Positions 341-46,000 of a DNA stretch of 64,000 bases are shown piece by piece; position 1 is the stretch's first letter; every line of letters begins with the position of its first letter. The DNA is from Convolutriloba macropyga (taxonomy: Eukaryota), in NCBI RefSeq assembly GCF_964194025.1, contig NC_134479.1, positions 2,356,001-2,420,000 on the forward strand, written 5' to 3'. The notes beneath the pieces are model-generated. The model saw only the letters and a list, made by a program, of their open reading frames with translations, did no database searches and was not told the DNA's origin. Both the position numbers and the translations under genes were made by a program.

Positions 341-1044
341 GCACAGCAGACGTAGAGGGTAATGAGGTGGTTGCAGTTTGTGAAGAGAAGCCTCATGAAT
401 ATCTCTTCTCTCCTCTGTGTGTGTTGGATGAGGAACTGAAGGACGAAATGGACTCAAAGGAGTGGTCATCTAAATACAGAAAGGAAGTCTTCCACACTCA
501 GCAAGCAGCTCTTAATGACACTGCACGCAGCAAAGTTGCCATGCAGTTGAAGGCCGCAGCAGAGGACGGATCTGTGAACCAATTCTCAACCCAAGATATG
601 CAGAACCCACACATGGAGGATTGCGACACAAGTCAAGAGAGAGGAGGAGCCGACAACAAAATGGGAGAATCCGAACTGGAGAGACTTTTGGGAATATCTA
701 CCGAGTGTGAAATGGATTGGGCGAGACCCCGCGAGGAGTTTGTGGAAATCCCAGACGCAACTCCTTTCAACGCGTTGGCAGAGTCTCATGCCATCTCAGA
801 GCATGCTGTGAGAATGGGTCTGCCGGTGATCACCAGCGAACATGCCTGGCTCAGATCGAGAGAGACAGAGGTCAAATCTCACCACCCCTCTGAGGTTCCA
901 GGCGAGCAGTCGTCATTCGAGGCCAAGACACCCATTCTGTCCCAGAAGCCGAGGATCAAGGGCAAGTCGCTGACAGTGGACGACATGGTGTGGCGCAGGA
1001 CTCGTGAGAAGTACGAAGCGGAACCGGATGTTGCAGTAGAAGAG
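341..1044 (+). CDS. Titin-like gene, first exon visible in the window (gene is 5'-incomplete); carries WxRxRE motifs
   Basis: Acceptor ttacgtttAG|G at 340/341 (phase 1), open frame of ORF 319..1149, donor GAG|GTGAGT at 1044/1045 (phase 0) matching the phase-0 acceptor at 1411. Confidence 0.85.
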
Positions 1045-1410
1045 GTGAGTAGAGTTCAGAAGCTTAGAGGTCATTTAGTCATCTCTATTGTACATCGCAG
1101 GCCTGTATGCAAAAGTGAAATTGGTCGTCAAAGAATGGGGATTATTTAAGTCATAATTTTGATGTGATCGAATTTTCCTTTCCTATCTTTGTTTGATTGT
1201 TTACAACCTTTTTGATTATCAGTTGCTCCCAGTGGAGACATTTTTGAGCAAGCTTAGAAAAGTGTTTTTAGCGGCATTGGTAAAATACAATCATCATATG
1301 TACAATAAATAACTCAAATGGATATAAGGGTTGAAAGGATATATAAATGTTAAATGAAAAGCGTATGTTAGAATATCTGAGTTAATAATTAATTTCCTTT
1401 ATCTGTTCAG

Positions 1411-4400
1411 GTGCACACTGTGACTATTCTGTACGAGGAGTATGAAGAGACAGAGAATGAGTTGATAATGGGAGTGTGTAAGGAGGAAGAGGACTATCCT
1501 TTCATCACTCGTCTCAGAGAGAAAATTGCAGAGGAGATACTCGAAATGCCAGATCCTATCAACTGTCTTGCCCAGAGCATATTCAGTCGACTGGAAAAAG
1601 ACAAAGCCAGACTGGAACAGGAAACGATCGAAGGTGTAGCCAAAGACAAGACACTGGTCCATTCCTGGTTCGACAACCCTCTCTCTATGGATGAAATCGA
1701 GACAATCCTCAGTTCTGACTTTGCCCAGTACTTCCCGGAGGATGACAAACTGGCCGAAGTGTTGTTGTACAGAACCATTTGCATGCCAAAAGAGACTACC
1801 CAGAGCTGGATTCGAACGCGCGAGGACAAACATTTTGACACGTTCAACGCCAAGACAAGTCAAGTGTTCTCAAGTTTCGATGAGCTGAAGTATTTCCTAA
1901 CTGAAAAGGGATCCTGTTTGATTGGGAAAGCAGAGCAAAAGGACTGCGAGGAGAAATGGATGCGAACCAGACATCTGACTGACTACCAGAGAGGCAAGAA
2001 GGTCGACCAGACAGTGTACGAGTCCCTTGCCAGACATGTGGTTGCCTTGAACATGCTGAACGAACTTGCCAAGGCCAGAGAAACTGCAGTGAGCACCGGC
2101 CGAGTTCGAGACACAATCCAGGAGTCATTCACGATGGCCGAGCTGGCTTTGATCAATGAGTACATTGAGTTCCCGGAATTTGAGTCGGATAGCGCACCCC
2201 AAGAAGCAGACATAGTCTGTATGGGGGCTGAGGAGGTGCAAGAGTGGATCCGACTGCGAGAGAGCATCCGAGATACCTTCGTCAAACTGGCCATTGAGGT
2301 GAATGGACCGGGCGAATTCACTGACTTGGTGATCGAGTGCATCAATGACGTCCAGGGTTTGGGCAAAGAAGCTGTCTCACCCCAGATGCAGCTAGATTGG
2401 ATAAGACCTCGTGAGAAATACACCCTCAACCTCATCAAGTCTGGCACTGCCCGGGTTGTCCTGCTGGACATCTGGCAGAACTCGGAGGACGTCCAGGAGG
2501 ACACGCGAGGACTGAACGATGCAGACGTTCTTCAAGAGGACTGGGCCAGACCTCGTGAGTCATTGAAAGTATCATCGAGGAATAACAATGAACTGGATTC
2601 TATGCCTGAGAACAAAGTGACAGCGGATACTGTTGACGAACAGAACTTGGCCCGTGCAACTGAGGGTGACGTTGAAACACTCGAAACAGAAGATAAACCT
2701 CAAGATGAGGTCAAAAGGACGAGTGAAAAATGCAACGAACGAGCAGTTGAACAGTTGGTCAAGAGTGAGCCCAAATGCGAGGTTGTTCTCGCGTGCTCCA
2801 AGCTGGGCGAGGAGGAACAGGACACAGTTGAACTGGAAACAAAGGATACCAGAGACAACGTGTCCATCTCAGAGACTGAACAACCTCTGGAAGCCAAATG
2901 GTGCAAACTGCCCAAAATGGAGATCGAGAAACACGAATACAATCCAGAAGAAAAGGACACTTTGGACATTGTGATCACTCTGGACGAATTGGTTGCAGAT
3001 GATTCACAAATCACTTTCAAACGATTTCTGGAACCCCTTTCCAAGCTGCCCAGCGATGAGGTGGATAAATATGATGTCGAAATTGTTCCGAACCCTGAAA
3101 GCAACTCCACTGAGATCTATCTACACATTAAAGAGTGTAACCCCGAGACCATCGGAAACTTCGCTTGTTTCTACACGAAGCCAGACGAGACTCAAGTGGG
3201 ACTGGGTTTTGTGGTCTCCATCAATGAGGAGGAAAAGGTAGAACTGGACGACGCTGCGGAAGATGAGACCAAGGAATCAATGCAAGTTGAGGAGCCAGAA
3301 GAGGAAGTTAAGGAGGATGAGGAACAGCCGGAAGAAGCGGAGCCTGTTGAGGAGGGACAAATGGGAGAACCCGTGACAGAGGAAGATGTCAGTGACCAGG
3401 TGAAGGTTGATGATGAGGCACAGGAGCCAGAGGAAGATCTAAAAGAGACACTGGAAGATAAACAGGACGAAGAAACGAAAGAGGAGATGCAAGTTCCGGC
3501 AGACGAGGAGCCAGAACAATCCGAAGACGAGGAAGGAAAAGACGAGGAAGAAGGGAAAGACCAGCATGAGATTGAAGAAAAAACTGAAGATGTGGCTCAA
3601 GACCAGTTGGAGGTCAAAGAGGACGAGCAGGAAACACCCCCCGAAGAGGAGCCAAAGAAAGAAGAAGAACCAGAGGTAGATGACAGTGCAGTTGAAAAGG
3701 TGGAGGATACTTTCGAAGAAGAATCCAAGGAAAAGATGGAAGTTGAGGACAAGGAGAAAGAGGAAGCTCCTGAGGAGGAAACGCCAGAGGAAGCAAAAGA
3801 AGAATCGGCTCAAATGGAAGAAAAGGTGGACGAAGAAGATAAGGATGACCAGATTGCCGTGGAAGAGGAAGTCGAGGAAGAGGCGGGAAAAGACAAAGAG
3901 GAAGAGCCGGTAGAAGACAGAGTTGAAGTTGAGGACAAAGTTGATGAAGAAGAGAAAGTTGAAGAAATTGTCCAAGAGAAGCCTGAAGACGAGGAGGAGG
4001 AACCGATTGAAGACACTCCAGAGGAGGAAGTCAAAATGGAAGAAACGGTGGAAGAGGAGGAAAAAGCGGAAGAGAGAATTGAGGACGAAGAAAAGGCAGT
4101 AGAAGAACCTCAAGAAGAGGATGAGGAAATAGAAGAGGAGATCTCAGAACCCAAAGAAGAAGATACAAAAGAGGAGGAGCCAGCAAAGCCAGAAGAGGAA
4201 GAAGAAGTGGAAGAAGAAATTGAGGCTACTGAGAAACGAGAGGAGTACAGGGAACCCAAGCAGTGGCAGGAACCCCAATTGCAGCACCCACGTCACGAAG
4301 AGATTTTAGAAGATGTCAAGTCAGTCGCTTCGGAAGAAGTTGAGAACTTGATGTCAGTTGCGAGAACAGATTCGTTGAGTGAACATAGCTTTGATGAGTC

Positions 4401-7400
4401 GAAATTGTTGGAGCCAATTGATAGACCACTTCAAGTTCCAGTCAATGAAAAGCTCTACTTTGAAGGAGGTCACATTGCAGATCAGCAACTGGTCAACCCT
4501 CTTCGCCAGTTTGAGCCACAAGATGATGAGCAGACTGACTACTCTCAAGAACTGGTTGCGATACAGATCGATATTGATAATGATTCCAGACTGAAGCCAG
4601 GCAGGCTCACTCCCAGTGACGAGTTTGGTGCCAATGTTGTTCCCGAAGACACCTGGAGTTTTAGAGTGCTGGAACCAGTTGAACCGGTACCTACAGAGCC
4701 AGTGTTTTTGAAGCCGGAGCCTTGCGACTCTCCAGTTCCGGAGGTGATGAAGATTGATTTGAGAATTAGTGACGTCAACATCCCAGAGGACAAAATATTC
4801 TCAGAGGAATCTGTGCATATTAAGATTGCAGACATTCAGGGTCTGGACAAGAGTGTCGTGTCTGAGGAAAATGTGGACATCAAGGTGTTGGATCTGAGTC
4901 CAGTCGATCCGACAGTGACTGAGGAGACCAGAGTCCAGATCAAAGTGCAGGATCGCTCTCCAAGTGATCAGGTGGTGGTGCAGGTTGAAGAGGCAGAGTC
5001 TGCCAGTGTAATCACCGACGACTTGGTCACACTTACAATTCAGAGTCAAGAAGTTCTCAAGTCACCATCAGCTGATTCCTCCGTCAACTTGCAGATCCAT
5101 ACCAAGTCCTCGGATGCCAGGGGATCATTGGAACCAGTTCGCATCAGCATTGACACTGCAAGCGAGCACAGTCCACTGGACGACAAGAGTGCGACCTCTG
5201 ACTACGCAACAGTGTCTGTATACGAACCAGAAGAAAAGACACTGGATACATTCGACGAGTCTTTGGACCTTCTGGCTGTGCCTCGTGAGTCAATTTTGAT
5301 CAGTGTCGATTCTGAATCCTCGCAATTATCACCAAACAACGAACTGCAGGACATTGCATGTGTAAGTGTAACCGAGCCACAGACTGAGAAGTTGGACGGA
5401 ACTTCTTCCCAGAGTGGAAGCCAAGTGGAATTAGTGGCACTTCCTCAGGACGGAATCAGCATCGCTTTTGACCAGAAAGGTGACGAGCACTCAATTGAGA
5501 GTCGTCGAATGGCTTCTGTCGCTATCTCAGAGCAAGACAGTCGTTTGGATGTTCTGGGCGAAGAATTAACAGAACTCCGAGTGCTAAGCAAACCAAACGA
5601 TGCTGAAAACGTCAACATTTCGATTCTCACTGAAAACTTTGAGAACAAAATGTCCTCGAGCAGCCTTCCGCCCTCGGCAACTGTTACCACCAAAGACCAC
5701 CTCAATCTTTCCATTGACGAGAGGATCACAACCCTGGAAGTCTTAGGAAAAGCTTCTGAACAAGAAGAAAACGTTAATATTTCCATTTTGACCGAGAATT
5801 ATGACAGTGGAAACTTTTCACCTGTGAGTGCCACGGCTGCTCTCGCTAGTGTAGGAGGCAGTGAACAATTCGAAGTTGGAGTGGATGAACGAATCACAAC
5901 ATTGGAAGTTTTGGGGAAAGGTGCTGAACTTATGGAAAATGTTAGCATTTCAGTTTTGACTGAGAGCTTCGAGAATGGAGGTCCATATCCTGTGAACGCA
6001 ATGACGTCACGAGCCAGTGTTGGTGCCAGTGAACAGTTTGAGATGGGAGTTGAGGAGAGAATGACTACTTTGGAAGTACTGGGAAAAGGAGCAGAGAGGG
6101 AAGAATGTGTGAACATTTCCATTACGACTGAGAATGTTGATGATGAAAGAATTCGTGCTGCTTCTGCGACAGTTACAACCGAAGAGAAGTTCGATCTATC
6201 AATTGACGAGCAGATCACGTCTCTGCAAGTAATAGGGAAGCCTGCTTGTAAGCAGGAGGAGAACGTCAACATTTCCATACTTACTGAAGACTGTCTGGTA
6301 TCTACTAATAGATCGGACAGGGCCGTGGTCAGTGTCTCAGAGCCACAGTTCCAACAATTTTTCAACCAATCTCCATGTGAACAACAAGTACTGGCCACTT
6401 GCAAGCCAGTGGTGAACATTTCATTCCAACTGGAATCACTTTCTCACACTTCTTCTGTCGAGGAGGATTCTGAGTACAGCTTTTTGGACATAAGAAACTT
6501 CAAGCCAGAGAGACACCAGTCTATCAATGAGCAGGATGTCCACTCTCTAAGCAGAAGTTCTCTTGTTCTTCTGCCAAGAGAGGCAACTGAACACTTTCAG
6601 ATTATTCCAGTGCCTGAGTCCAGTGCCTCAGCAGCACCTGTCAATTTCACTCTAGCAAGAGTTGAGGTGGGCCAACAGCAGTCCACACTATTTTCGGAAC
6701 AGGTGATCAAAGCGAATGCCTGGATCACTGAGGAGACTGGCAGAAGGCAGGCTAACTCTCCTGTACAGGACAATAGGGTGCCTTCCCCAGTCCAACAACA
6801 GAATCGCAACAGTCGACCTGAGTCGCCGAATGTGCTGCCGTTTGTGGAAGCAACCGCTGCAGCCGAAACCCAAGCATGGCTCAGCTGTTTAGAACAGACA
6901 CCAAGTCCTCTGGCATCTGCCTCTAATGTGGACAGTGAGACCAGTCTGGAGGACAAGCGAGAGCATTTAAGAAATGTGTTGTACCATTCTGTGCAACAAG
7001 ACAGAACTCTGATGGGATCCCAAGCAACTGCACTGGATGCTGCTGTTTGGGCCAGTGCCGAAGACATCAACACTGCCAGTATCAAGCCACAGAGACCCAT
7101 TCACGGGTGCATGTTGAGCAGCAGATCAGCCATGGGATTCTACTGCGCAGTGGTTCTGAGGAACTACCTCCTCGGAAGACCAGCCGGAGAAACCAGCCAG
7201 TGGCAACAGGCTGCACTGGATGTGCTGGACATGGCCAAACCAGGTGTCAGCTCCACTATGGTTGTGCTCTCCTCAATTGTGTCTCAAATGGAGGGATCCA
7301 GTAATGTCGAGGTCGAGCAAGTGAGTTCTGATGTTGTGAACCAGTTGAACGAGCTTGCCTCTCAGCCAAGAACTCCTCCTCGTGCTGAAAGTCCAGGTGT

Positions 7401-10400
7401 GAGTGAAGATTCCGAACATGGAGTTGTGGATGAACAAGTTAACAGTGCAGCTCCTCCTGCCTCCTACCCCCCTGTGTTCACTTCACCGCCAATTGGCGAA
7501 GTGACTGTAAATGCGGGCGATGATTTCTCAGCAGAGCTCTTCGTGGACTGTCCTCCGAACAGAACCTCGATCCAGATTTTGAAAGACAACGCTAGATTCT
7601 ACGAACCCAGCAACGTGCATGTGGACATCAACTATGCTGGAGGAATCGAAGTGAAGATGCACTTCTTCGCCGTCACTCAAGACAACTGCGGAATTTACCA
7701 AGTGAAGGCAGTTAACATTGATGGGCAGGACTGTTCATCATTCTCACTCAGAATTAACCCAGATGCCACTGGCTTAGACAAAGTGGAGGTTAGGGAACCC
7801 ACAACTTCTGCCAAGGACGAGTTGCCACCTAATACTAAAGAAGACTTCACGTCAGGTCATTACGAGCCAGTTAAATTTGAGATGATCGACTCTCAGACTG
7901 AAGATGAAGATGATGGATTTGGCTTCGCAGACGACACGGATTCTGTTGTGACGGAGAATGCCCTGTCTCAAGTGTCCGAGGCCCCCACTCTTAACGAAGG
8001 GACAGTCAGTCAGCAAGACAGAGAAAAACAACTGGGATCTGTGGAATCATTCATTGAGTTCCCGCGACAATTGATGGGCGCTGAGATCAATGATGTGGAA
8101 ATTCCGGCCTCTTGTTTCTCATTTGCCACCAATTTATGCAAAGACTCGGTTGGTGATGCGTTTGATCTGATGAAGGAAATGGAAGCAATCACTTCTAGAA
8201 TCCAATCTCCAGTTGAACAACAGATGCTCTATAATCCACAAAGTGACAATGTGGTGGAAAAAGTCCACCTGGAGATCAAAACGGAAGCCACTCCCAAAGT
8301 TCAGAACTTGTCTTGGGAAGATCTCTTGTCACACGCAATCGAGCAGCGATATCTCTTCACGTCTCCTATCGAAGTGAGGAGAACCAGTGCTCTCAATAAC
8401 CTCAGCTCTTTTGGTAACCAAGTTGCCACCGAAGCTGTCGGGTCGAATTCGAAGCTGGTCGGGGTCGAAAGTACCAGCAAACTGACATCGTCAGGAGTTG
8501 TGTATCCAGTGGCAACTAGTTCAGCTTTGAATAGTATGAGACCAGGTTGTGTAATGAAGACCAAGACAGAATCACTGGCCTCGTCAAGCAGCAGTTCTGT
8601 CGCATTGCTCCAAGACGAAGTCTCGAGTGTGTTGGAAAGATACCTCGGATCCCCTTTGAATGTTGCGTCACCTACCCATGCAGAACTAGGGCAACTGGAC
8701 AGAAGCCAGTGCCACAGTCCAGTGTCCGAGAGCATGCCTGATGCCAAATTTGTGGACTGGTGTGATGTTCCAATTATGACTAGCCCGAAACCTCTCAGAA
8801 CATATTCCAGTGGGTCCACTTTCTCTTCCACAGAAAAAGTTCATGTGCTCATCCAGATTTCAGACCGGGTATATACTGGAGGCCAAATTACAGTTGATGA
8901 GTTGGGAAATGTCTGCAATGCCTCTATTAGAGCACCAAAATATCAGCCGGTGATCAAAGCTCAGAAGCCAGTTCTAAAAGGAAGCATCCAGTGGCCTTCG
9001 CCTGGGTACAACCCAGAAGTCGTTGTTGAGCACAAACCAGCGACTGTATTTAAACTGGCACCTCGTAAAGGTTTTGTGAAACGTCGCAGAGTGAACAAGG
9101 GATCTCTCGACGGAAGTAGCTGGAGTGTGTCAAGTGGCGATTCCTACGATATGGTTCCGAGTCACATGCTCAGCAACATGTCTCTCAATTCCCTACTGAG
9201 AGAGTATCCCAACTTGGAGGCACCCCCTGCTGTTCTCTCCCAGTACCCGTCCACAGTGGAGATTAGGGAAAACAATGACATCCGACTGAATGTGCGAGTT
9301 GCAGCTTCTGATGACTGCAGGTATCTCTGGTACAAGAATGGCCGACCTCTGCCTCGATTCAGTTCTAGATTGAGTGTTAACATCGCAGACCACAAAAATG
9401 GATCTAAGACTGCGTCGCTGCTGATCAAGAACTGTCAGCCTGAAGACCAAGGCAGCTACCTGTTGAGAAGTGTGAATGAATTTGGGGAGGAGCGAATCCA
9501 GACCAAGATCCAAGTCAATCTGAGTGACAGCAGGCCAGTTGCCGAAGAAGAGCAGACGTTTGTGTCTGAGATTGGAGTGGAACTTTCGGATGCTATGGCA
9601 AAAGCTAAACTGAACACTCTGATCAAAGTGATCTCCGTGGACTCTTTGAGTGATTTGGACAACGACGATGAACTGTTTTTCCCAATCAGAAGCATCGAAG
9701 ACATCTCACCAGTGAAAGCGGAGAGCATGTTGAGAAAGATTGACCAGACAAAGAAGAATTCCTGGACTAGCCAGAGTATCACTGCACTGATTGATGACTA
9801 CAGGAACCTCCCGGATGCAAAACCGGTGTTCCTATCGGAGCTTCCGGAGCAGAACTACTGCAGGACTGGCAACGATGTGCACATTGCAGTAAAAATTGCA
9901 GCCAATGCCAACAGCGAGTTGGTGTGGAAAAAAGACGGAGAAGAAATTGAGGTGGATTCCCAGAAGAATAAGTTCAGAGTGAATGACCAGCTCCAGTGGC
10001 AGAACCAGTACTCTTCTCTCGTTATCCTTGATGCCACTGAGGATGACAGTGGGAAGTACGAGTGCTTCGTCAGACCTCAAAACAACAACAATTTCATCAA
10101 CAACAACAATCTAATCAACTCAGTTTGTACTAATATCACAATCAACGCAAACGAGCACTGTGCGTTACCACAGGAGAGAATCTCAATCGGAACAGACATT
10201 TCTCGCAATGAGATTGTGAGACGAATCAGAGGCAATGTAAAGATTGTGATGGAATCCTTCGACCAGAGATGCAAGCCTCTCAAATCAGCATTGACCACGA
10301 GGGCATTTGACGAGATGAGTTGCTGCTCGAGCTCAATGGAGGACTGCATCGTATTGGCCAACATTTACGAATCCATCGAATGTCATCTGCCAAAGGAAGG

Positions 10401-13400
10401 AAAAGTTAAGGAGGGTCGCAAACCAGTGGAGCAGGCGTTCATTCGACCACCGAAAGAGATCCACCAGTCTTCTCTCAGTATCCCAGGAGAGAGAGATCCC
10501 TCTGACGAAGAGAACCTGGAAGAACAACACTCTGACTTAGTTGAGATGTTCTGCTCTGAGTTGAAGACTGAGTTGGAATTGACAAAAGAGAGCCTCGGTT
10601 ACTCTTCCAGACTTGACATTGCAAGGGAGGAGCTCATTACCCTGGAGAGGACACCCATTGAGGATAACAGTTTCTTTGTGAACCAAGTGAACTTTGCGAT
10701 GCAAGACACGACAGCAGCTGCGGAACACAATCTGGATGAAAAGTCAGAGTTCGAAACTGTAGTTCAGCCACCACTTCTACCACCCAGAAAGAAGTCGAGT
10801 GCCAGTGTGTTCATGGAGGAATTGGAGAAAGTGATGGAACAACTGAAGAATGAAACTGCAGAACAAGAAAAGGAACTGGAAACTGCCAGTCTGCAGAAAC
10901 AACCAGTTCAATCCCCAATTTCTCCCCCCTCCAGTGATGACTCATTGCTGGATGTCGTAGAAACTAATTTGACCAGTGAAATGACAAGTGATGTGAACGC
11001 AACAGGACATTTGCCTCTACCTGAGGAGGAATTCCTCGCTGGCGAAAAGGAAATGAAAGAGGTGAACAACCAATTGGATGATCTGAAAGACCAACCGGAG
11101 AAATTCGAGTTGGAAGTGACTCCTGTGACAACCCCAGTTGAGATCCAAGTGGATTCAGCCAGTAGTCCAGAGGAACCCAGTGCCGCTTCCTCATATGACA
11201 ATTTGGAAAACAACGAGGACAACTTCAGTCCGACAGGTGCTGTGAATCAACTCCCAATTGACGCTGACTTGTTGGCTGCAGGTGACCAGCTCATTAAACA
11301 ACAACAACATCAAACTCATCAGAACCAACTGCAACAACAACAGGCTAATATGGCCACTGGCCCACCACAATTGCTGCAATTGTGTCACTTGAGTCTGGAA
11401 ACTATTACGGAGGAGGAATTGGTATCCAGCAGAGACTCACTCAGTATGGTTTCCTTGGCAACCACCTCGGCAGCCACCACTGAGAATAACTTGATGCTCA
11501 GCAGCTGTGAGGATGTCAGTTCAATCAGTGAACAACAACCAGTCAATGTTGCGGTCACTGCTCCCCCTCCCACGCTCACTTGTGTTGCTCAAATTGCACA
11601 GCAAGAGCCACTCTCGCCCCTCGACGACACTGCACAGGATATCTCTGCCTACGACAATTTGGACAGTCCACTTTTGGAAACAACTGAGGACTGTTTTGTC
11701 GAAGAGCTTTCTGGTTGTGAAGATCTGGGCGATTCCGATTCCATCTTAGAGTCCAGAGTGTTGAGTGAGAGTCTTGGAGCGAGCGAGGAAGTTGCTGAAT
11801 TTAAAACGTGCGGCGAGACAGGACTGGATAGAGATGTTGTAACAAACCATTGCGAAGTAAATGTTTCAGAAAAGGTTCCTTTTGAGCAGAATGAAATGGT
11901 TGTACAGAAAGTAGTGAATGCTGCCGCATCGGAGGTTGATCATCAGGTAGTTTCGGTTGCGGCAGACGATTTGGATCTCTCAACTGTCAAAGAGAGCATA
12001 ATGATTGACTGTGAACCACCACTGGACAGAGAACAGCAAGTGAGAGTGACCGATGAGTCTGAACAGGTCCAGCTTCTTTTGGCGGACACTGACAATCATC
12101 TGGAGAATGTCTGTGAACCTGAGGATGTCAAAATCCAGGAAATGCTCAACATACCCACTGAAGAAGCCAGTGAAGTTGTGAAAGAAGATGAGAGAAATCT
12201 ATTGAAGCCAGCGAAGCAGGAACAAGCTGTGACCTCAGTTGACGAGGTCAAGATTATTGATTCGCCTCTACAGTCTTCAACTGAGAGCTTGCCTACTGAA
12301 CAGGTTCCAGTTGAAGAGACATTAGAACCAGTGGAACAGGAGGACGCTTCTCTGGAACCAATCCAAGAGAGCGCATTGGATCTGAGCCATGTTCTGGAAA
12401 CGGAGGAAGTCATCGAAGGTTCTGAGAAACTTTCACCCTCAAAAGATGAACTGGAACAGGTGGCAGAACCCACTTATCAAGAAGAAATGGAACAAGTTGA
12501 TTCCAGTTTGCCATCAGTTGTCCAGCAGTCTGTTGCATCTCTGGATCTTGAAAGCGAAGCTGATGCTCCATCTGAACAAGTCGAAGACATCATTGACAAC
12601 GTTGAACAATCTGAAAGTGCCACTGTCAAGGACGCAGAAGAACTTCTCGACAAAGATGTGGAACCAGTTGAAGAGGAACGGGCGAACTCCTTTGTGGATT
12701 CCTTGCCAGTTGACGACGATATGTGCCCGGAAGAGGAACTGAAAACTACTGCTGAGTTAGTTCCTGAAGTTGAACAGGAACCGGTCACTTTAGTGGCAGA
12801 TGATAGAGAATCTGTTGAGGACAAGTCAGTTGTGAGCAGTGTGCGAGGATCCATCTCGTCAATATCTGGGTCTCCAGTCGAGGACTTGTTCCTCACTCCG
12901 GAAGGAAAGACAGAAGTTTCCACTGTAGAGCCAGAGGCACTTCTCTCAGCTGTGGCTCAGTTGGCCGAAGACACTCCGGAAGATGAACTGGATCAAGACA
13001 AGTTGATTGCGGAGACTGCCGAGGTACTGGACCAGATTGAAGAGAGAGCAGAACCATTGCCAGTCAGTGAGGAGACATCTTCTTCAATGATGGTTGAAGT
13101 TGCGAAGGCCGCTGTTTCAACTTTGGTCAGTGGAACAGCAGCTGTGATAGAGAGTGTGACGCACATGCTGAAACCATCCGATGAAGAGATGAATGCTCTT
13201 TTAGCCAGAGAGGAACCAGTTGTTAATGTTGATCCTTTGCCATTACCTGAAGGTCCTAAAATGGATGAGGAATTAGCACCCGAAAAGGAGCCGATGATCG
13301 ATGAAGACGCTCTTGTTGAAGTCATTGAAGATGTCGAAAATGTGGCTGAACTTGAAGATGATGTACAAGAAGTGATTTCAGAACAGATCAAGGACACCGG

Positions 13401-14354
13401 TTCGTCCACCTCATCTGAGCAACTATTCGAAGATGCTCTTTCAGAAAGAAAGTCCGACGATTCCTCCGAGGACGCGTTCGAAAATGCAGATCAAGATAAA
13501 ACTCACTCTTCGGATGAAGAGAAAGAAAGCGAATGTGACGAAGTGGCCATGGACGAGAGACTTGACCGATCGGATGTGATGTCTGAACTGCCACTTGACG
13601 ACATGATCAGAGAGCCAGAGGTCCTGGCAGACGATGATCGCATCGCTCCAGTTGCAAAACCGATTGACGATGATGAAGATTTTGCCGAGATTGAAGAATC
13701 TGAGGAAGAGGCAATGGAAGACTTTGAACCGGTAGAACGTGAACAACTTCTGTCTTCACCCGAAGTGCCTCACAGCTTGTCCGAAAGCAGCGAGGGGGAA
13801 GTGAGTGACGATGATTTAGTGGGAAAAGAGATGCCGGAGAACGAGAAGGCATTCCTGCCTCCACATCTCTTACTGGATGCTCTGGAAAATGCAGCCAAGG
13901 TTCCAGCAGAAACCCCAGAAGAGAGAAAGCAGCCAGGAAGCAGTGCTCTGAACAGCAGCAGTGATTACAACGAACACTTCGACTTTGATGAACAGAACAA
14001 CAAACAACAACAACGAATTGGAAATTTTGCACCCATTGACACAATCAGCGAATTCCACGAGGGTCGCACAGACAGCTTGACCTGTCTTTCGAGTGGAACT
14101 TGCGACGCAGCCACATCTGCGTCTGGACTCGGAGAGGAGGCGAATAACCGTGGTCAGGTGATGATGGTTGAGGAACTGGCTGTTGGAAGGTGGGTGACTC
14201 CAGTGGACTCAGAGGCTGAGTCTCTCTCTGATTTGGAGAGATACATCTGCAAGGCCAGACAGCTCTACTCTGACTCAGAGATAGTCAACTGCTCTGACGA
14301 GAGAGTGGAAGTCACCACTTTCGAGGAGCAACTCGAGGAAAGCGACATTCAAAG
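1411..14354 (+). CDS. Giant 12,944-bp exon of titin-like protein (PEVK-like tract, 3-4 Ig domains, repeat regions)
   Basis: Uninterrupted 4315-aa ORF; acceptor ttcctttatctgttcAG at 1410 (the listed start is an acceptor-adjacent GTG); donor AAG|GTAGGT at 14354/14355, phase 2, matching the exon at 19097; Ig motifs such as PPVF..GIYQVKAVN, WYKNG..DQGSYLL.SVNEFG, WKKDG..DSGKYEC. Confidence 0.93.
2884..3225 (+). other. Divergent Ig-like domain
   Basis: ~110-aa beta-rich segment ending IYLHIKECNPETIGNFACF, resembling the I-set L.I......D.G.Y.C motif but lacking the conserved Trp. Confidence 0.45.
3226..4260 (+). other. PEVK-like (E/K/P/V/D-rich) low-complexity tract
   Basis: ~345 aa dominated by EEEP, EEKVE, KEEE; purine-rich GAA/GAG DNA. 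Confidence 0.8.
7468..7760 (+). other. I-set Ig domain
   Basis: PPVFTSPPIGEVTVNAGD...QDNCGIYQVKAVNIDGQDCSSFSLRI. Confidence 0.85.
9220..9520 (+). other. I-set Ig domain
   Basis: APPAVL...WYKNGRPL...SLLIKNCQPEDQGSYLLRSVNEFGE. Confidence 0.9.
9817..10147 (+). other. I-set Ig domain with Asn-rich loop insertion
   Basis: KPVFLSELP...WKKDGEEI...SLVILDATEDDSGKYECFV, then PQNNNNFINNNN. Confidence 0.88.
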
Positions 14355-18693: not shown

Positions 18694-19096
18694 GGTATTG
18701 ATACTAGCCCCTGAATCCTCCTATTAAGAAGCAGGATTATGTCTAAAAGTGATATGAAATCAAAATAGTTTAAAATGTTTTCGCACATCAATCAATTTTT
18801 TCCTTTGCTGCTGATCTGTCAATCCTAATCTGGGTTATGGAAATCAATGGCGGCTGTTGTTCGGCAGGGTATGTTTTGAGGAAGGACGATAAAAAAAAGT
18901 TCAAATGGATTCAAATTTGATTCTATCAGTTTGCCCGAAATATTTTTTTAAAACTCAGCTGCGTTCATTTGTGCTGTGTTTTGTTGCAAGTTAGCAATTT
19001 GTGAATAATTTTAATTTACTCGTTGAAAGATGCTTTGAAAATTCTGTTTGGGAATATTGAGAATTTTGTGCGATTAATATATGTGTTGGGTATTAG

Positions 19097-19352
19097 GATG
19101 ATCACACAGCCTGCGAGACCTCAGAGCTTCATCATAATAGAAGAGGAGATAGTGGAGAGGAGGACAAAGAGACACAAGAGACCTCCTCAGTTGGGAAAGA
19201 ACAAGAGTCACACTCTCCCTCCCTCCTCATTGGGGAGTGTTGTGTTCAGAGACTCAAAGAGGAGTGCCACTGTTAGAGACAGCATGAACATTGAGGTCGT
19301 CAGGAGTCTCTCTGAGGAAGAGATCCTTCGCAAACTATCAAGCAACGAAGAG
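19097..19352 (+). CDS. Titin-like gene exon
   Basis: tattAG|G acceptor completes AG+G = Arg from the giant exon; open frame of ORF 19023..19391; donor GAG|GTATGT, phase 0. Confidence 0.82.
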
Positions 19353-20018
19353 GTATGTACACCTGGCATGCATTTGTCCTATTTTGCGTAACACCCCCAG
19401 TCACCAATTGTACATTACGTCGTCTTCTTTAGAACGTGAATGTGTAAAAATAACACGCGCAATCGGCGAAGTAAAGACCGCACGGGAGGCGTAAACGTTT
19501 CATGCCCTCTAAGCTATGGAGTTGGGTGGTTGGGGGAGTGACTGGGGAGGAAGAGTAGAACAGATCTAGAATTTAAGGAAATGTTAATTCGATTCTACAG
19601 ATTACAGGCTCCTTTCTTTCACAAACTTGCCTGATACATTTGATAACAATACTTTTGTCATCATGAATGCTTGCTTACCTTTTTGTTACATTTTTTGGCG
19701 TTAATTATGTAATTATCTTATCATGGATTCTTCCTATCCTATTGTCACATCTTACAAGTGAAGTGTCTATTCAGCTGTGTTGTTTCTATCCAATAGTTTA
19801 GTCGACTTGGACGGTCGTAAGAAAAGGACAATTCAATTTTAGCTTCACGCTTCATTCTTGTTCACACTTTTTTAATCTATCGAATATATGCAAAAACTAT
19901 AATTTTGATAGTATTAACACTGGTAAGGTATGTAAATTTTTTTCTTATGATCTTTTTTATCTTTCGTAACATTTCATATCTGATCTTAGTTTGTTTGCTA
20001 AGGTTCCACAAAAAAATA

Positions 20019-26815: not shown

Positions 26816-27805
26816 GTTGAGTCTGGCGTGTGCAATTTCTTCACCATGTCTTATGAGAGAGCATCAGTGAAAGACCAACTGAGACAGTTGACAGAAGAGG
26901 AGATGTTGGTCACCAGGTACTCCAGTGAGAGTGACACCAGCCCAGGAAGTCGAAACGATTCCCCATTCCATACTCCAAAGAGGGGAGTCTCGCCATTCAA
27001 GAGGGCAGTTTTGGTACCTTCGCCCCTGATCAACGACCCGAATGCCTGTGTGCCCCTATTTGAGAAGCGCCGTGTCACCATTAAAACCGATTCCACAGAC
27101 GAGGAACCCGAGAACCAGCAACAAGCCTGTGCGTGCCCAGAGGCGCCCATATGTAGCGCCATGTCAGAGCAATGTCTGGACTTGATTGATTCCAGCAGCA
27201 GCAACAGTGGTGGTGATGTGGGCAGTGGATCCAGCTGTAGTAGTCTGTACAGTGATAGTGGCTCCAGCCCATCTTTCGCATCGGCACAGCGGGTACCATC
27301 TCGAAAAATGAAAGGGGAGCGGGCACAGGCTACTACGTACAAGCCAGCTCTGCAACCACACGAAAGCGACAACTCAGACACTGGGTTGACCCTGGGTGAC
27401 CTTGAGGATGCGGGTGCCATTTCGAAGGACGTCGTCACCAGAGTCAGAAAGATCCAGCCGTCGTCATTGAAAAAGAGCAGTCCTTTATCCGGAGACAGAA
27501 AGAAGATCAAACACATGCGAATGACTCTCACATCTGAGAGTACAATCAGAAAGAGTTTCAGTTCCTCTTCCAGTTCAAGTGGATCTGGCGAGAGTATCCA
27601 GTCTGTGGAGAGGAGTGCATCCGCCTCCCTAACTGTGGAAGTTCCACCCAAGATCATTTCATCTTCGGTGGACGAGGGTGGAATGGAGTTGAGTGAGGGT
27701 GGAACAGCAGTGATCACAGTGTCGGCCATTGCACAGCCAAGTGGAACTTTCAAGTGGATGAAGGGCAACTTGGATGTGAAGGAGAGCAGAGATGGAAGAG
27801 TACAA
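26816..27805 (+). CDS. Titin-like gene exon: Ser-rich region plus N-terminal half of the last Ig domain
   Basis: tttAAG|GTT acceptor, phase 0; ORF 26801..27838; EVPPKII...EGGTAVITV...FKWMKG; donor CAA|GTTAGA. Confidence 0.85.
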
Positions 27806-27878
27806 GTTAGAAATGCTTACAAATATTGTTCCACTTAGTATCCAATACTGTATTTTCATCAACTCTCGTTAAAACTCT

Positions 27879-28049: not shown

Positions 28050-28138
28050 TTCTCTTTCGACCAAAAATGTGACGAAAGTGTGGGGAGAGTGTTAACTCAC
28101 TTGTAATATTAATCTGTATGCTGTTTTACTGTGTACAG

Positions 28139-28280
28139 GTGAAACATTCTGACTCCTATTCAACTCTGATGATGAGTCGACTGAGTAGACAAGACTGTGG
28201 CACTTACATGTGCAAAGTACAAAACTCTGCTGGCATCTCTTGGCAAACAATCCGAGTATCACAAGTCAACAACTCATCTG
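28139..28280 (+). CDS. Titin-like gene exon: C-terminal half of the last Ig domain (not in the ORF track)
   Basis: gtgtacAG acceptor; translates VKHSDSYSTLMMSRLSRQDCGTYMCKVQNSAGISWQTIRVSQVNNSS, completing the Ig fold; donor G|GTTTGT, phase 1. Confidence 0.88.
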
Positions 28281-35145: not shown

Positions 35146-35345
35146 NNNNNNNNNNNNNNNNNNNNNNNNNNNNNNNNNNNNNNNNNNNNNNNNNNNNNNN
35201 NNNNNNNNNNNNNNNNNNNNNNNNNNNNNNNNNNNNNNNNNNNNNNNNNNNNNNNNNNNNNNNNNNNNNNNNNNNNNNNNNNNNNNNNNNNNNNNNNNNN
35301 NNNNNNNNNNNNNNNNNNNNNNNNNNNNNNNNNNNNNNNNNNNNN
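35146..35345. other. Assembly gap (200 N)
   Basis: Run of exactly 200 N, typical of a fixed-size scaffolding gap. Confidence 0.99.
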
Positions 35346-36199: not shown

Positions 36200-39100
36200 C
36201 ATCTAAACCAAAGAAGGGGTGAATGATGCAACCAAGAGACCAGAGGGTAGCTGGCGTTGACTAGATTTCCGTTCCGAGAAAAAAGTGAGCAAAAAACGGC
36301 TAATCAGCCGAAACACGTGCGAGACCGGCAACGGGTCGGACGTACGTACCGTAAGCTTGACAACGCATACAGATCCATCTTTTCCAGGCAACGTTGCCAC
36401 AATTCGTCCCAGAGGCCATATCCCACGCGGAGTGAGGTCTTTGAGGATCCACAGCAGGTCATTGACTTTCAACGAAGCACCCTGTTCGGACCATTTGCTT
36501 CGCTTCGTTAAAGTGGGAAGGTATTCTTTAACTAGGAGTCTCCAGACGTAGCTCATAAGCTGCTGCACGTTTTTCCGGAAATTGAAGGATGCTGGCATGG
36601 TTGATAAAAAATCTCCTGGTGGCAGTGAATTGTAAGGTCTCTGCACCAGAAAATGATTTGGGGTGATGGCTTCTTCATTGTCTGGTACGTCAGCCACATG
36701 AGTAAGTGGCCGAGAGTTCAGCATACTTTCGGTCTCAACCATGATGGTGTGGAGGACATCTGATGTAAGCCTCTGCTCATGAAAACGTAGCAGTATGCCA
36801 AGTAAGCTGTTCAAGGGATCTGATCACGTTAGGAGGTTGCTGTTCAATGACTGTCCTCGATACTTTGAAGCGGCATTTGACGCCCGTCGAGTTTTCCCGG
36901 TTTGTTTGGATTTTGAACAAGATGATGAGACCGGTACCAATTTCTTTTAGGTTCACGTTCTGTCATTTCGACTGGTTTTATGTAATTTTTCACTAAATCT
37001 GTTGAAAGCGTTTTATCGTATTTTTCTTGCAGCGTGGGATTATTACCTAGTCTTTTCTCCACGCACTGCAGTCGATTAAAAGCACAGTATTAGTTGTTCT
37101 CCAAAAGGCAAAGTGTTTTCCAGGGAAAATCAATTTCATATCGCTCAGAGTTATGTCAGATAGTTTTCGGAAAAACTTTTCAGGTCTTCATCTGAAAGAA
37201 CAGAACCGTTTTCATGGATTCCTTCATTTTCAATTTTCCAGAATTGCTCGACTAATTCACTTAAATGTGGTTCTTCCGTCTGCTGTCTTGAAACATGCTA
37301 AACGTATAGTTTGGTTGTTGTTGAGTGATGGTTAAATGTAGATTCTGAAGGATTGAGAGAAATTTCATACTCCCCAGCTAAAATTCATCCTAAGTTTGTT
37401 TTTACACCAAACGGTTGATTTATGTTTCCGGGTATTACTTCGATTGGATGAGTGTCAGCAAAAGTGTTTACACCTAAGAGGGCTCCAATTTTGCCACCAA
37501 CAACGTGAGGGAAATGGATTTGGCGGAGATTACTAAAAGTGTCACATATTTGATTCAACTCAAATATGTTGGCTGGTGTGACGTTCATTGCTGGCGTGCT
37601 GTATGCACATGATTTCTTTGGAGTTTAGTTGATGTTTACGCTTCGCATGGAAGTGCTAGAAAGTTTGTTATAGTGTCAAGCAAGAAAGTGAACGGGCTGC
37701 CATGATCTATGAGTGCATACGTATCAAAGGCATTGTTGCCCTTGACCAAAGACACCGGCATCAGCGGTAGTTGTTCAAGCCAGTCTTTCGGAGGAGACAG
37801 ATTTTTATTTACGCAGAGGCGTTGATTATTTGAAGGAGAATCGAGGTTACTCCTCTGAGTATTTGATTCTTTCGTTTTACCAAAAGATTGTCCATAGCAA
37901 CAGTGTTGTTGTTTGTTTTGGCTTGGTGACACTTCATTTGATGAATGCTTAGTAGGACTAAAGGAGCAGATTCTGTGGAGAATGCTGCTGGCGGTCCTTT
38001 CTTTTGTTTTGAAGGGTCGTCTAGGGTAGAATGATGTAGGCCGTTGCGGGACTGGCAGTTTTTTTGTGAAGAACAATTTTTTCTGAGGTGATTATTGCTC
38101 AAATATTTCGTGAATTCGTGCACAATTTGTTTTTGATAACGATTCTATATCAGTCTTGTGGTGATGGCTTTTGGTAGTCGGGACAAGTTGCCAAAAAATG
38201 GTTATTATTGCAATGGGGGCAATGTCGGTTGTTTTGCTGTTTTCCGTTGGTTTTCGTGTTGTTTGAGATCGTCACCGAGGATGACCACTCCCTATTAGAA
38301 GTGGTTATTTGTGGTTTAATTGCAGGCTGCAAATCAGCTTTAGATTTGTCTTTGCCAAATAGGGTTTGGTTACTTAATTGTGATGACGGTTTACAGTGAG
38401 CCATCGGAACACTAAAGTCTTTGACGTTGTCTATGTTGTTTTGTTGTTGTTTAAATGACGCAAAGATTTGCTCGCGATTGATGGTATCGTAGATTTGAGC
38501 ATGAAGTTCTAAAAATTGTTGAAAGGAACGAAGTGACGCTGGTTCAGCTGTTGTTAAGAGCCTATGTTCCGTCCATTTCAACAGAACATCATAAGGCACT
38601 TTTTCTTTCGCTTTTTTGAACAATGTGGAACTCTGGAAGCCAAGGTATTCAAATGTTTGAAATCAGCGCTTTAGAAAGTATGAGAATGCGACAAATGATT
38701 TTTTTATTATTTGAATCAGTGGCGTGCCATGACTCGCGTTGATTTATAAAGGCACCCACTACAACACTTGGGTCTCCAAAATGGTTCATCAGTTCATTTA
38801 GAGTTGTTTCATAATAAGCTGGTTTACAGGAGTACGACTCAATGATTTGTTTTGCTTTTCCAGAGACTGAGTTCTGGAGATACGTGATCCAATGTGTGTC
38901 AGTAATACCAGTACTATTATGAACCATAGAAAAAAAATTGTTAATTCATTCATGGTATCGCAGAGGGTTGCCATTGAAGTGCGGCAGTTACGGTGGTGGT
39001 AGTTTGATTGCTTGCTTGTTAGTTACAACGTTGTCGGCAATATAGCTTTTGCCTAGGTTGTCTGGAACTGGTGGTGGCAGAAATTTTGGTAAATGAGCCA

Positions 39101-43000: not shown

Positions 43001-46000
43001 AAATTGACTCAAACAATGTCAATGGACGACAACTACCATCAACATCGCCCGTCTATAATAATTCACGGAGCAGAACACCATATAGATCACAATGACGGAA
43101 TGGGTACAACAATACTTCAAGTAGTAGAGATAACAGAAATTACCAAGGATATCGAAGATCTAATAACAATCACAACGATAGAAGCGAAAGTTACAATAGA
43201 AACGATTACAATAGAAGTACAAATAACAGTTACAATCGAAATAATCACTATAGACGATACAATAATAACAGATCAAACTCCAGATACACAAATCGCAGTA
43301 ATTCGAGACAGAACTCGCCATACAACAGAAATAATAATAATAACTATAAAAACAATAAATATAGCAGACAAAGACAATACAGCAAAGACTCAAACAGAAG
43401 TGATAAATACAGACAAAGATTAAACAGTAACAATAGACATTATTCGAACAGTGATAACAGAGATAATAGAAGAAGTTCATCGAACAGGGAACAGAACAAC
43501 AGATACCATTCAAGAGATCGAAGAACAGATGGGAATAATTACAACAATAACAATAAAAACAGAATAAGCAGCATAGAGGCACAAACGCAAAAAGATGACC
43601 CGCCAGGAATCGATGAAAACGACTACACATCAGAATCATCTAATGAATATCAAGAAATATTAGATAAATTCTACAATGCACACGAAGATACATGCAAAAC
43701 CGTAATAAATACACTAGAAAGTAACCCAACTTGGATACTACCAATGTACCAGTGTAACAGACTTTACAAAACAAAAACCAATATTGGAAAATGATTTCCT
43801 CTTAGGTTCAGGAGCAACATTAAACATCTTAAACGAAGATACATGGAATGAAATAAAATACAAAAATCCTGAAATACACCTCGAAAGAGCTCACAAAACA
43901 CTTAGAGCAGCCAATAATACAACTATAGAAACATTCGGAACAGTAACACTAAATTTAACTCCCGAAAAACATCAAAGAGCAGAAATAAATTCAATACAAT
44001 TTTAATATTTATTTCTATATAACACAATGCAATCATAATTTTCTCGTAACTTCATTCTTCAAAGAATATATAGAAACCACAAATGTAAATTCGAATAAGC
44101 TAACAATCAATACCAACACAATTTAGATAACAATATTATTTTCTTCATGAATAGCACAAAAGGGTATCCTTACTATTCTCGACTATATCCAATTTTTAAC
44201 AAAGAACCGATATATTTTGAACGGGACCAACATAAATGTATAACCTTTCCAATACCTATATTCAAACAAATGGAAAAATCAAGTGGAAAAACAGTTTACG
44301 GATCAATCCACTATTTTGAACCAATAAACAAATACCAAAATTTATAATTCGCACATATCAAAGATCTGTCACTAGAAAAAGAACACTTCATCGACATATT
44401 CTTAATCAATAATAACCAACATAAAATAACAATAAACGAAGGATTAATTGGTTTCATGTATCAAAACATCACATTCAAAAAACAAAACGAAGAAATGTAC
44501 CAGGCAAACTTGATAGATTTTTTTTCAGAATTGTATTATCTAACATATGAAAACGAAAATGACATCACTGAAGTATTGAATATACAAGAAAATGAAACAA
44601 TTGAACAAGTCGCAACGTTTGAAAGAAAACCTAATTTCAAATGTAATTTCAATATTAGTAAATATACAGAAACAGACAAAGAATTGATCCAAGTGTTCGA
44701 TTTCCAACATTCATACTTAACGCAAGAAGAATTTGAAAAAGTAATAACAATCAGGTTAACATATAAACAAGTTTACACAACGACAAAATTCGATGTCGGA
44801 AAAACAAAAGTGAAATTGAACCTTCCTATGAAAAAAGACGCCATATTCAAAAAACAAAGAATCAGTAAAGTTCCAATACACTTTAGAGGAAGAATCCAAA
44901 AACTTTAGACGTATTTAAAACAATACGACATCATTGCACCTGTCAATAAAGAACAACTATCAACGGGAAACACATTCACAAATCCAGTAATATTATTACG
45001 AAAATGAGAATCCTTAAAAATAGTATTAGACGCCAGATACCTGAATAGCATGATAGATGAATCAAAATGCAACTGGCCCATTGAACCTGTTGATGTAGCC
45101 CTAACACGAATAAATGGAACAATATTTAAAACAGCTGATCTTAATAGTGCGTACAACCAGATACCATTAGACGAACAATCAATGAGATACACTCATTTCA
45201 CAATTGGCAATGAACAATACTGCTTTAAACGTTAATACAAAAATGAAAGCACTCCAAAGAAACCTTGGAACAATAAACTTCCTTGCAAAATATGTCTATG
45301 GTATGCAACTAACACTACAACCATAGTATAATCTTCTACACAAAGAAAGTGATTTCAAATGGACAAAGGAATATCAAACAATCTTTGAAAAAAAGAAAAG
45401 AACAATAACACACAATTTAGAGATAACAATGCCTGATACTACAAATCCATTCTATACAATAACAGATGCTGCAGATACAGGCATCAGAGCAGCGTTATTA
45501 CAACAACATCCCACTGAGAGGAAAATGAGATTAGTGTCTGCAAATTCAAGACTATTTACACCCATAGAAATACGACTTTCCACACTAATTCGAGAATGCT
45601 CAGCAATAATCTTCGCTCTAACAGAATATGAGTTTTTACCAACAGGCTCAGGCCACCCAATTGAACTATTTACAGATCACAAACCAATCATTTTTCTTTT
45701 TACTCAGAAGATTAAACCAAATCACAGAGTTTACCGATTTCAATTAATACTGATGAAATTTCCTAACTTACACATTATTTGGACAGAGGGAAAGAACCTG
45801 GCCCTCCCTGATCTTTTGAGTAGAACATTTGATGAAGAACATTTTACAAAAACACGTGATATAACAGTGGAAATACTAGAAAACATAAAATTGTTTTTCG
45901 CAAAAACACCATTTGCAAACAACCTAGAATGCCAATACAGTATATGTAATAACACGAATGACGAAAAGTCAGAAAAAACACCTTACCCAGTATTAGCTAA

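Follow-up and report, generated by a model that had tools for sequence, protein, structure and literature searches.

A periodic motif array in a giant titin-like protein

We identified an array of repeats headed by the motif W-x-R-x-R-E in a single-copy gene of the acoel Convolutriloba macropyga that encodes a giant titin-like protein. The stretch of DNA analysed here, which we call the window, is 64,000 nucleotides (nt) long and corresponds to positions 2,356,001 to 2,420,000 of the forward strand of contig NC_134479.1. Coordinates below count from its first letter, negative ones being upstream of the window. The array comprises about 17 units of 43-55 amino acids (aa) each, i.e., ~840 residues spread over four exons, and its heads are strict in ten units and degenerate in about seven. 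It is a real repeat array under protein-level selection. The units share an acidic lead-in, the motif W-hydrophobic-R-x-R-E and their length, and nothing else. Our tentative preference is to regard the array as a multivalent ladder that would dock at fixed pitch on a repetitive partner or on a periodic filament.

A first-pass annotation, made from the letters of the window, had listed eleven sites at a period of ~49 aa. All of them were found where it had placed them, in a single reading frame (frame 1), and one more head precedes them. These heads, all on the + strand, are given here with their state in the orthologues described below:

463..486 (+): degenerate unit head W-S-S-K-Y-R-K-E, on the tryptophan lattice; W kept in all four orthologues
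718..735 (+): strict motif WARPRE; WARPRE in all four orthologues
847..864 (+): strict motif WLRSRE; WIRPRE, WMRSRE, WLRSRE, and WIRSRE in the orthologues
991..1008 (+): strict motif WRRTRE; WIRTRE, WMRPRE, and WMRPRE in the orthologues
1504..1521 (+): degenerate motif ITRLRE, W lost; RLREKI invariant and W absent in all four orthologues
1666..1680 (+): degenerate motif WFDNP; WFDxPL kept in all four orthologues
1807..1824 (+): strict motif WIRTRE; in frame, kept in orthologues
1957..1974 (+): strict motif WMRTRH; last residue D or H, never E, across orthologues
2095..2112 (+): degenerate motif TGRVRD, W lost; RVR[DE] kept in all four orthologues
2245..2262 (+): strict motif WIRLRE; in frame, kept in orthologues
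2398..2415 (+): strict motif WIRPRE; in frame, kept in orthologues
2542..2559 (+): strict motif WARPRE, final array unit; in frame, kept in orthologues

A pattern of this kind might be an artefact, i.e., the product of chance or composition, a DNA repeat read in frame, or non-coding sequence, and the available sequencing runs for this species, which are DNA, leave some room for such a reading. The counts argue against it. The strict pattern W.R.R[EDH] occurs eight times in 550 aa, against a mean of 0.009 and a maximum of one in 20,000 residue shuffles; the composition-matched control proposed with the first-pass annotation therefore does not reproduce the motif count. In the six frames of 94 kb (the window and 30 kb upstream) there were ten matches in the frame of the gene and a single one elsewhere. 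Six of the nine gaps between strict copies measure 43-52 aa, and six or more did so in only 5 of 1,000,000 random placements. The other three gaps (96, 150, and 258 aa) are occupied by degenerate units, and nearly all tryptophans of the region fall on the ~49-aa lattice. Once recomputed, the spliced spacings between the eleven sites (43, 48, 49, 54, 47, 50, 46, 50, 51, and 48 aa) were identical to those first reported. Tandem Repeats Finder showed no DNA tandem repeat of ~147 nt at the array, and the arginine codons of the ten motifs are a mixture of the CGN and AGR families (CGA, CGC, CGT, AGA, and AGG). Hence, it is the protein sequence, and not the DNA, that is constrained. The array also continues into an open frame of 12.9 kb, and the motif is kept in five orthologous proteins from other assemblies. 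For practical purposes, the artefact reading is refuted.

Gene model and extent of the array

The gene model was built by tblastn of the orthologous protein P0001 against the window and the upstream DNA. It consists of the following exons, all on the + strand:

about -8160..-8047 (+): exon 1, tblastn model
-7641..-7354 (+): exon 2, tblastn model
-6914..-5424 (+): exon 3, tblastn model; holds two strict WIRLRE motifs
-5109..-4734 (+): exon 4, tblastn model
341..1044 (+): exon 5; acceptor tttag|GC at 340/341, donor GAG|gtgagt at 1044/1045; colinear with residues 719-961 of P0001 (60% identity)
1045..1410 (+): phase-0 intron of 366 nt within unit 10; GT..AG, in-frame stops, orthologues continuous across the junction
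1411..14354 (+): exon 6, the giant coding exon; open frame from 1411, donor caaag|gtaggt at 14354/14355
about 19095..19418 (+), boundaries approximate: exon 7, tblastn with residues 5856-5949 of P0001
about 26816..27832 (+): exon 8, tblastn (residues 6063-6381 of P0001, exons 8 and 9 together); weak I-set match at the end of the exon
about 28133..28267 (+): exon 9, the last coding exon, from the same tblastn match as exon 8

Exon 5 encodes array units 6-9 and the beginning of unit 10, which is split by the intron. The giant exon (4,314 codons and two bases of a split codon) encodes, in this order, the last eight array units, an acidic PEVK-like tract, and then five ENVNISILTE repeats of ~55 aa, three Ig I-set domains, and long low-complexity stretches. 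Exons 8 and 9 encode the C-terminal region and a split Ig domain.

We infer that the splice between 1044 and 1411 joins the two halves of the array, since the intron has GT..AG ends, is in phase 0 and contains in-frame stops, and since the orthologues are colinear with the spliced product (P0001 runs straight across). The four sequencing runs of the same species are DNA, and their depth is even across the intron. The motif register had been claimed to survive this intron, and it does: the spliced spacings are regular and P0001 is continuous over the junction.

The array was also expected to reach upstream of the window. Two strict WIRLRE motifs are indeed found at -5600 and -5444, in exon 3, and between them and the window there are degenerate heads (WMNPEY and the GERAKE position), followed in exon 5 by WSSKYRKE. 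In the other direction, the motif at 2542..2559 is that of the last unit; the ~3,900 residues of the giant exon that follow contain no further copy. No paralogue emerged from a profile search of the species' own genome.

The gene probably continues further upstream of exon 1. At about -8160 this exon is preceded by a polypyrimidine tract and an AG acceptor, the residues before its first methionine are conserved in orthologues, and there is a split Ig domain 1 kb higher. The orthologue gene models that start at exon 1 would then probably be truncated at the N-terminus, and the array may be internal to a still larger protein. The split Ig-like domain lies at -9513 to -8680 and gives a weak I-set match (E 0.002).

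Between -30000 and -9000, on the + strand, we observed at least seven pairs of alternating exons, each exon corresponding to one domain of ~100 aa. Type A domains follow the pattern EPLEPIVTSEEV...ITVDVGRQQY.HKL.VSV, and type B domains the pattern VEP.E..SD...LPF.VDKE...DWTVS.VDKESETCVLSCSLSVDTDKLYKMKELPVV. With one representative of each, no Pfam family was found for either type, and the PDB search with type A was blank. Their appearance is that of a beta-rich super-repeat of two domains in a titin-like gene, which may be the gene of the array itself.

Two observations concern the DNA around exon 5. A poly-G run at 248-265, just upstream of the acceptor, differs by one G in a contig of run X2. 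In all four DNA runs, short contigs of lower depth join position 526 to 735, thereby leaving out 208 nt, a length not divisible by 3. The match on either side is only 24-29 nt long, and these contigs probably represent a similar fragment from another place in the genome rather than an allele.

Conservation of the array in orthologues

Few proteins resemble this region. An exhaustive phmmer search with a 397-aa repeat segment against 1.84 billion representatives retrieved two orthologue clusters only, P0001 (6,418 aa, 57% identity) and P0002 (5,988 aa, 41% identity). Word-based searches added the orthologue P0005 (5,799 aa) and the fragment P0007 (933 aa).

In a four-way alignment, each of the ten strict motifs has its counterpart at the homologous place in every orthologue. 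Loss of the motif in orthologues would have spoken against the first-pass annotation, and what we find instead is that it is kept in all of them. Among the four full-length orthologues (41-57% identity), the W/R/R/(E or D) columns are invariant in 38 of 40 cases, against 28% of the other 742 columns. The core of the units is thus more conserved than its surroundings, as one would look for in a docking array. The spacings between motifs vary by at most 1 aa between species (43-44, 47-48, 149-150, 50-51, 95-96, 51-52, and 47-48), and the partial orthologue P0007 retains six copies at 48, 150, 50, 96, and 52 aa.

The degenerate units are kept in degenerate form in all four orthologues, e.g., as RLREKI without the W, WFDxPL, RVR[DE], and QQWMxP. 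Their divergence therefore predates the split of these species, and these units are constrained in their own right.

What the units have in common

We built a logo from 40 units, numbering positions from the tryptophan. Upstream of it, E occupies position -5 in 21 of 40 units, and E/D are the commonest residues at -4 (16 of 40) and -3 (19 of 40). W at position 0 is followed by I, A, M, or L at +1, by R at +2, and by R at +4. Position +3 is taken by P (16 units), L (11), T (8), or S (4), and position +5 by E in 34 units, D in five, and H in one. Position +7 is hydrophobic in 24 of the 40 units.

Profile-profile comparisons of unit against unit with hhalign aligned 8-29 columns, centred on the motif. 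When the six motif columns were deleted, no pair of units exceeded a probability of 2.5%, in a test of low power given alignments of four sequences. As had been claimed, the divergence of the spacers thus goes beyond recognition, and the units show the short core with unrelated flanks that would characterise a docking array. Such a loss of similarity upon deletion of the motif is what functional short motifs typically show, in contrast to repeats that determine a fold.

Spacers are nevertheless not devoid of features. They contain blocks that are specific to one unit and conserved between species, e.g., VPGEQSSFE, GADNKMGE, YEEYEET, FTDLVIE, and LLDIW..DTRG. They are net acidic, with about 30% of hydrophobic residues, and their contexts vary along the array: Pro, Ser, Gly, and Glu abound in units 7-9, and later units look amphipathic-helical. 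An AlphaFold2 model of 806 aa of P0001, made with five alignment rows, had a predicted local distance difference test (pLDDT) score of 35, too low to interpret. In the low-confidence model units 7-9 appear as coil, and the motifs of the other units would precede amphipathic helices.

Searches among known families and structures

The repeat had been described as of an unrecognised type, and none of our searches assigned it to a known one. No Pfam family was matched on the repeat region by hmmscan of both window exons and of P0001; in the giant exon, Pfam matches only I-set, three times (E 2e-24). A PDB sequence search with an orthologue profile of the region was blank, and the only match of a 22-column unit profile in the PDB, to FRIGIDA, was at chance level (E 2.1). 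An ESM Atlas feature search, run for this gene and for the second motif gene described below, produced no usable match. A match to an existing Pfam repeat, which would have contradicted the first-pass annotation, was accordingly not found. A full-text literature search for the motif returned unrelated papers only, and the strings wxrxre, wirlre, and wirtre do not occur among those listed.

Several named candidates were examined and rejected. The nebulin repeat (PF00880) has no hmmscan match even at E-values up to 1, and its motif and period differ. The titin Z-repeat (PF09042) has no Pfam match in the window exons or in P0001, and the PDB profile search was blank. The RPEL repeat (PF02755, core RPxxxEL) has no Pfam match either; the R-P-R-E core found here has one residue between P and E, not three. 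Helical solenoid repeats (HEAT/ARM/TPR-like) have no Pfam match, and the units show no similarity without the motif in the low-power test mentioned above. Finally, the published consensus patterns of LIR (W-x-x-L), B56 LxxIxE, kinesin W-acidic, furin, and Akt RxRxxS/T sites do not fit, as position +3 is mostly P/T/S and there is no constant acceptor. The array thus appears to be an undescribed, lineage-restricted repeat family, although its general kind, periodic arrays of short motifs in giant Ig/spring proteins, is known.

A second gene with the same motif

By a DNA pattern search of the genome, followed by reading of the matches, we located a second gene on another chromosome. Its open frame of 1,652 codons (G000:C1:86603373-86608328) carries 13 copies of [WYF]xRxRE. 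It starts with WIRLRE, WARPRE, and WKRLRE, spaced by 48 and 47 aa, and continues with five modules of ~206 aa, each with a W.R[LP]REM motif and a [YF].R.RE motif exactly 49 aa later. Its orthologue P0006 keeps the motif pairs at 49-51 aa. Eight modules from the two species have few invariant columns, which are essentially those of the two motifs. Pfam gave no match on these modules, no Ig domains were seen near the gene, and an AlphaFold2 model of a module, made with eight rows, had a pLDDT of 44, too low to interpret. A further conserved segment of the modules, F.FI.W.KVDP, precedes the W.RLRE head by 55 aa. This segment, which can be compared with WFDNP and WMNPE of the array gene, may represent a degenerate third unit falling on the same lattice.

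The two genes have in common the core motif, the pitch (47-49 aa in the second gene, 43-54 aa in the array), the genome, and the fact that the motif is the most conserved element. They differ in that the second gene is built of ~206-aa super-repeats, in which a helical segment can be recognised between the pairs, and in that homology outside the motif is weak: blastp gives 20-36% identity with marginal E-values. An hhalign comparison of the two genes gave a probability of 17% (E 1.4e-3, 141 columns), with both motifs of the second gene in register with units 8-9 of the array.

Genome scans for motif pairs 47, 48, 49, 50, or 51 aa apart gave totals similar to those of the reversed-pattern control. 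The array gene and the C1 gene were the only ones with such pairs in long open reading frames. Open-frame matches on C2, C9, and C1:46.4 Mb are isolated chance matches in short open reading frames. There was no third gene above the control level in these scans, which covered pairs starting with W at these five spacings. The unit of motif plus pitch would hence be a small, apparently acoel-restricted family present in at least two giant proteins. That a second giant protein, dissimilar in other respects, has the same head and pitch suggests that the two share a partner or an ancestral unit.

Comparison with known giant muscle proteins

The best solved relatives of the Ig I-set domains of the host protein are Ig domains of the titin I-band (E 9e-11 in the PDB), which makes them titin-like. 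Taken together with the acidic PEVK-like tract, this makes a sarcomeric context of the host protein plausible. The PEVK-like tract is long, rich in Glu (E, K, P, V, D), and directly follows the array (about 3230-4260), and its DNA has short imperfect repeats. At 5605-6290, inside the giant exon, there are five tandem repeats of ~52-56 aa with the pattern E[NC]V[NS]IS[IV][LT]TE, each after a DERITTLEVLGK-like segment.

The closest analogies are with the simple repeats of nebulin and the Z-repeats of titin. Like the array, nebulin repeats form long series in a giant muscle-type protein, a motif of 5-6 residues is nearly their sole shared feature, and unit length is tightly kept. They differ in having SDxxYK every ~35 aa, against ~49 aa here, i.e., another motif in another lineage, and the acoel spacers are acidic and only partly helical. 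Nebulin binds actin, and the likeness drawn here is one of layout. Titin Z-repeats (~45 aa, binding alpha-actinin) resemble the array in unit length, in forming an array on the N-terminal side of an Ig/PEVK-like protein, and in a unit number of the same order. They are defined, however, by a hydrophobic helix that binds the EF-hands of alpha-actinin and not by W-x-R-x-R-E, and there is no sequence or Pfam match between the two.

The host protein itself is reminiscent of Sallimus/kettin, TTN-1, and twitchin, which are also giant, with Ig I-set domains, long acidic spring-like tracts, lineage-specific tandem repeats, and very large exons. Compared with these invertebrate titin-like proteins it has very few Ig domains for its modelled length, and Pfam found no kinase or FN3 domain in the window. 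We know of no counterpart of the W-x-R-x-R-E array in Sallimus/kettin, TTN-1, or twitchin.

Docking contact or structural joint

In the ladder that we tentatively favour, the motif would be the working contact of each unit. In an extended chain, the side chains of W (i), R (i+2), and R (i+4) would point the same way, and the commonest residue at +3, Pro, would fit an extended segment or the start of a helix. The three residues together would present an aromatic and cationic face able to dock into a pocket that matches it. With at least ten of these contacts at fixed pitch, the region would be a ladder to which one partner could bind in many copies, or a filament through its repeating subunits, the spacers, diverged yet length-conserved, setting the pitch. 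Nebulin SDxxYK modules work in that manner, with periodic contacts and a pitch set by the spacers. The proposed mode of action of the array would be nebulin-like, yet the array is not a relative of nebulin. We favour a docking motif because the aromatic residue and the three charged invariants are contiguous, Pro is frequent at +3, the contexts are varied, and there is no shared hydrophobic pattern.

Alternatively, the motif might be the structural keystone of a degenerate helical repeat, which is a serious possibility and nearly as likely as a docking array. Each ~49-aa unit would then be a small helical module, e.g., a two-helix hairpin of a rod or solenoid, and W-x-R-x-R-E would be the joint between units, with W packing on the neighbour and Arg/Glu forming salt bridges with the acidic lead-in. 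The motif would be kept for folding and stiffness, not for partner binding, and the constant spacing would be ordinary conservation of domain length. The spacers fit this well, being conserved between species, poor in indels, and moderately hydrophobic. So do the two low-confidence models, which are mostly helical outside units 7-9, the frequent hydrophobic residue at +7, expected where an amphipathic helix starts, and the persistence of degenerate units without the motif. Other features fit it less well. The units share no hydrophobic pattern without the motif (again with the low power of four-sequence alignments), whereas repeats of that type usually conserve core hydrophobic and turn positions and not a contiguous charged W-R-R-E block. 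The Pro/Ser/Gly-rich units 7-9 are modelled as coil, yet their motifs are perfect. Position +3 alternates between Pro and Leu, and no helical-repeat family was found in Pfam.

Several observations weigh against the docking array. Seven units lack W or both Arg and are still conserved as degenerate forms, so the motif is not needed in every unit. About 28% of spacer columns are invariant between species, about 30% of spacer residues are hydrophobic, and indels are rare, all of which fits folded units as well as a ruler. The acidic lead-in, next to the cationic face, could just as well be there for intra-unit or inter-unit contacts. The AlphaFold2 models, with pLDDT values of 35 and 44 throughout and thin alignments, lend no support to an exposed, extended, or buried motif. 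Finally, the filament- or partner-binding role is proposed for a partner as yet only hypothetical, and muscle expression of the host gene is assumed from its domain content only.

A third reading has the motif as a repeated site of modification or processing, with R-x-R as the recognition sequence of a basophilic kinase, of an arginine methyltransferase, or of a protease cleaving after basic residues. The invariance of both Arg and the presence of S/T at +3 or +6 in several units speak for it. There is, however, no constant phospho-acceptor position, Ser/Thr follows in only some units, and this reading explains neither the fixed ~49-aa pitch nor why W and E are invariant. Convertases recognise R-x-x-R or R-x-K/R-R, and arginine methylation occurs at RG/RGG; the motif has neither form. 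We regard this reading as very improbable.

A more specific version of the ladder can be considered. The ~49-aa W-x-R-x-R-E units could be an acoel-specific ruler module by which at least two giant proteins dock on one periodic filament, i.e., an independently arisen analogue of nebulin. In helical form, 49 residues would be ~7.3 nm long; the axial repeat of myosin/paramyosin filaments, 14.3-14.5 nm, is twice that, a match that is arithmetic only. We consider this version unlikely.

Other features of the window

Downstream of the gene, the window contains retroelement remnants and an assembly gap:

35146-35345: assembly gap, 200 N
36206-36814 (-), 45429-46022 (+), and 58095-59015 (+): retroelement remnants, with DUF5641, reverse transcriptase (RT)-associated RNase H, and a weak reverse-transcriptase match

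Significance

Giant muscle proteins that measure or organise filaments by periodic short motifs are known mainly from vertebrates (nebulin and titin). The muscle proteins of acoels, which branch near the base of the bilaterians, are poorly characterised. Here, the repeat family connects two giant genes of Convolutriloba macropyga that could not otherwise be annotated, together with their orthologues. If the motif were only the structural joint of a lineage-specific helical repeat, the gain would be a modest one in annotation. The motif does provide an experimental handle, as a six-residue peptide and three obvious point mutants could be used to fish out a partner, and a periodic partner, if found, would raise the interest of the array sharply. 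If true, an independent motif-and-pitch system in acoels would show how molecular rulers and ladders arise.

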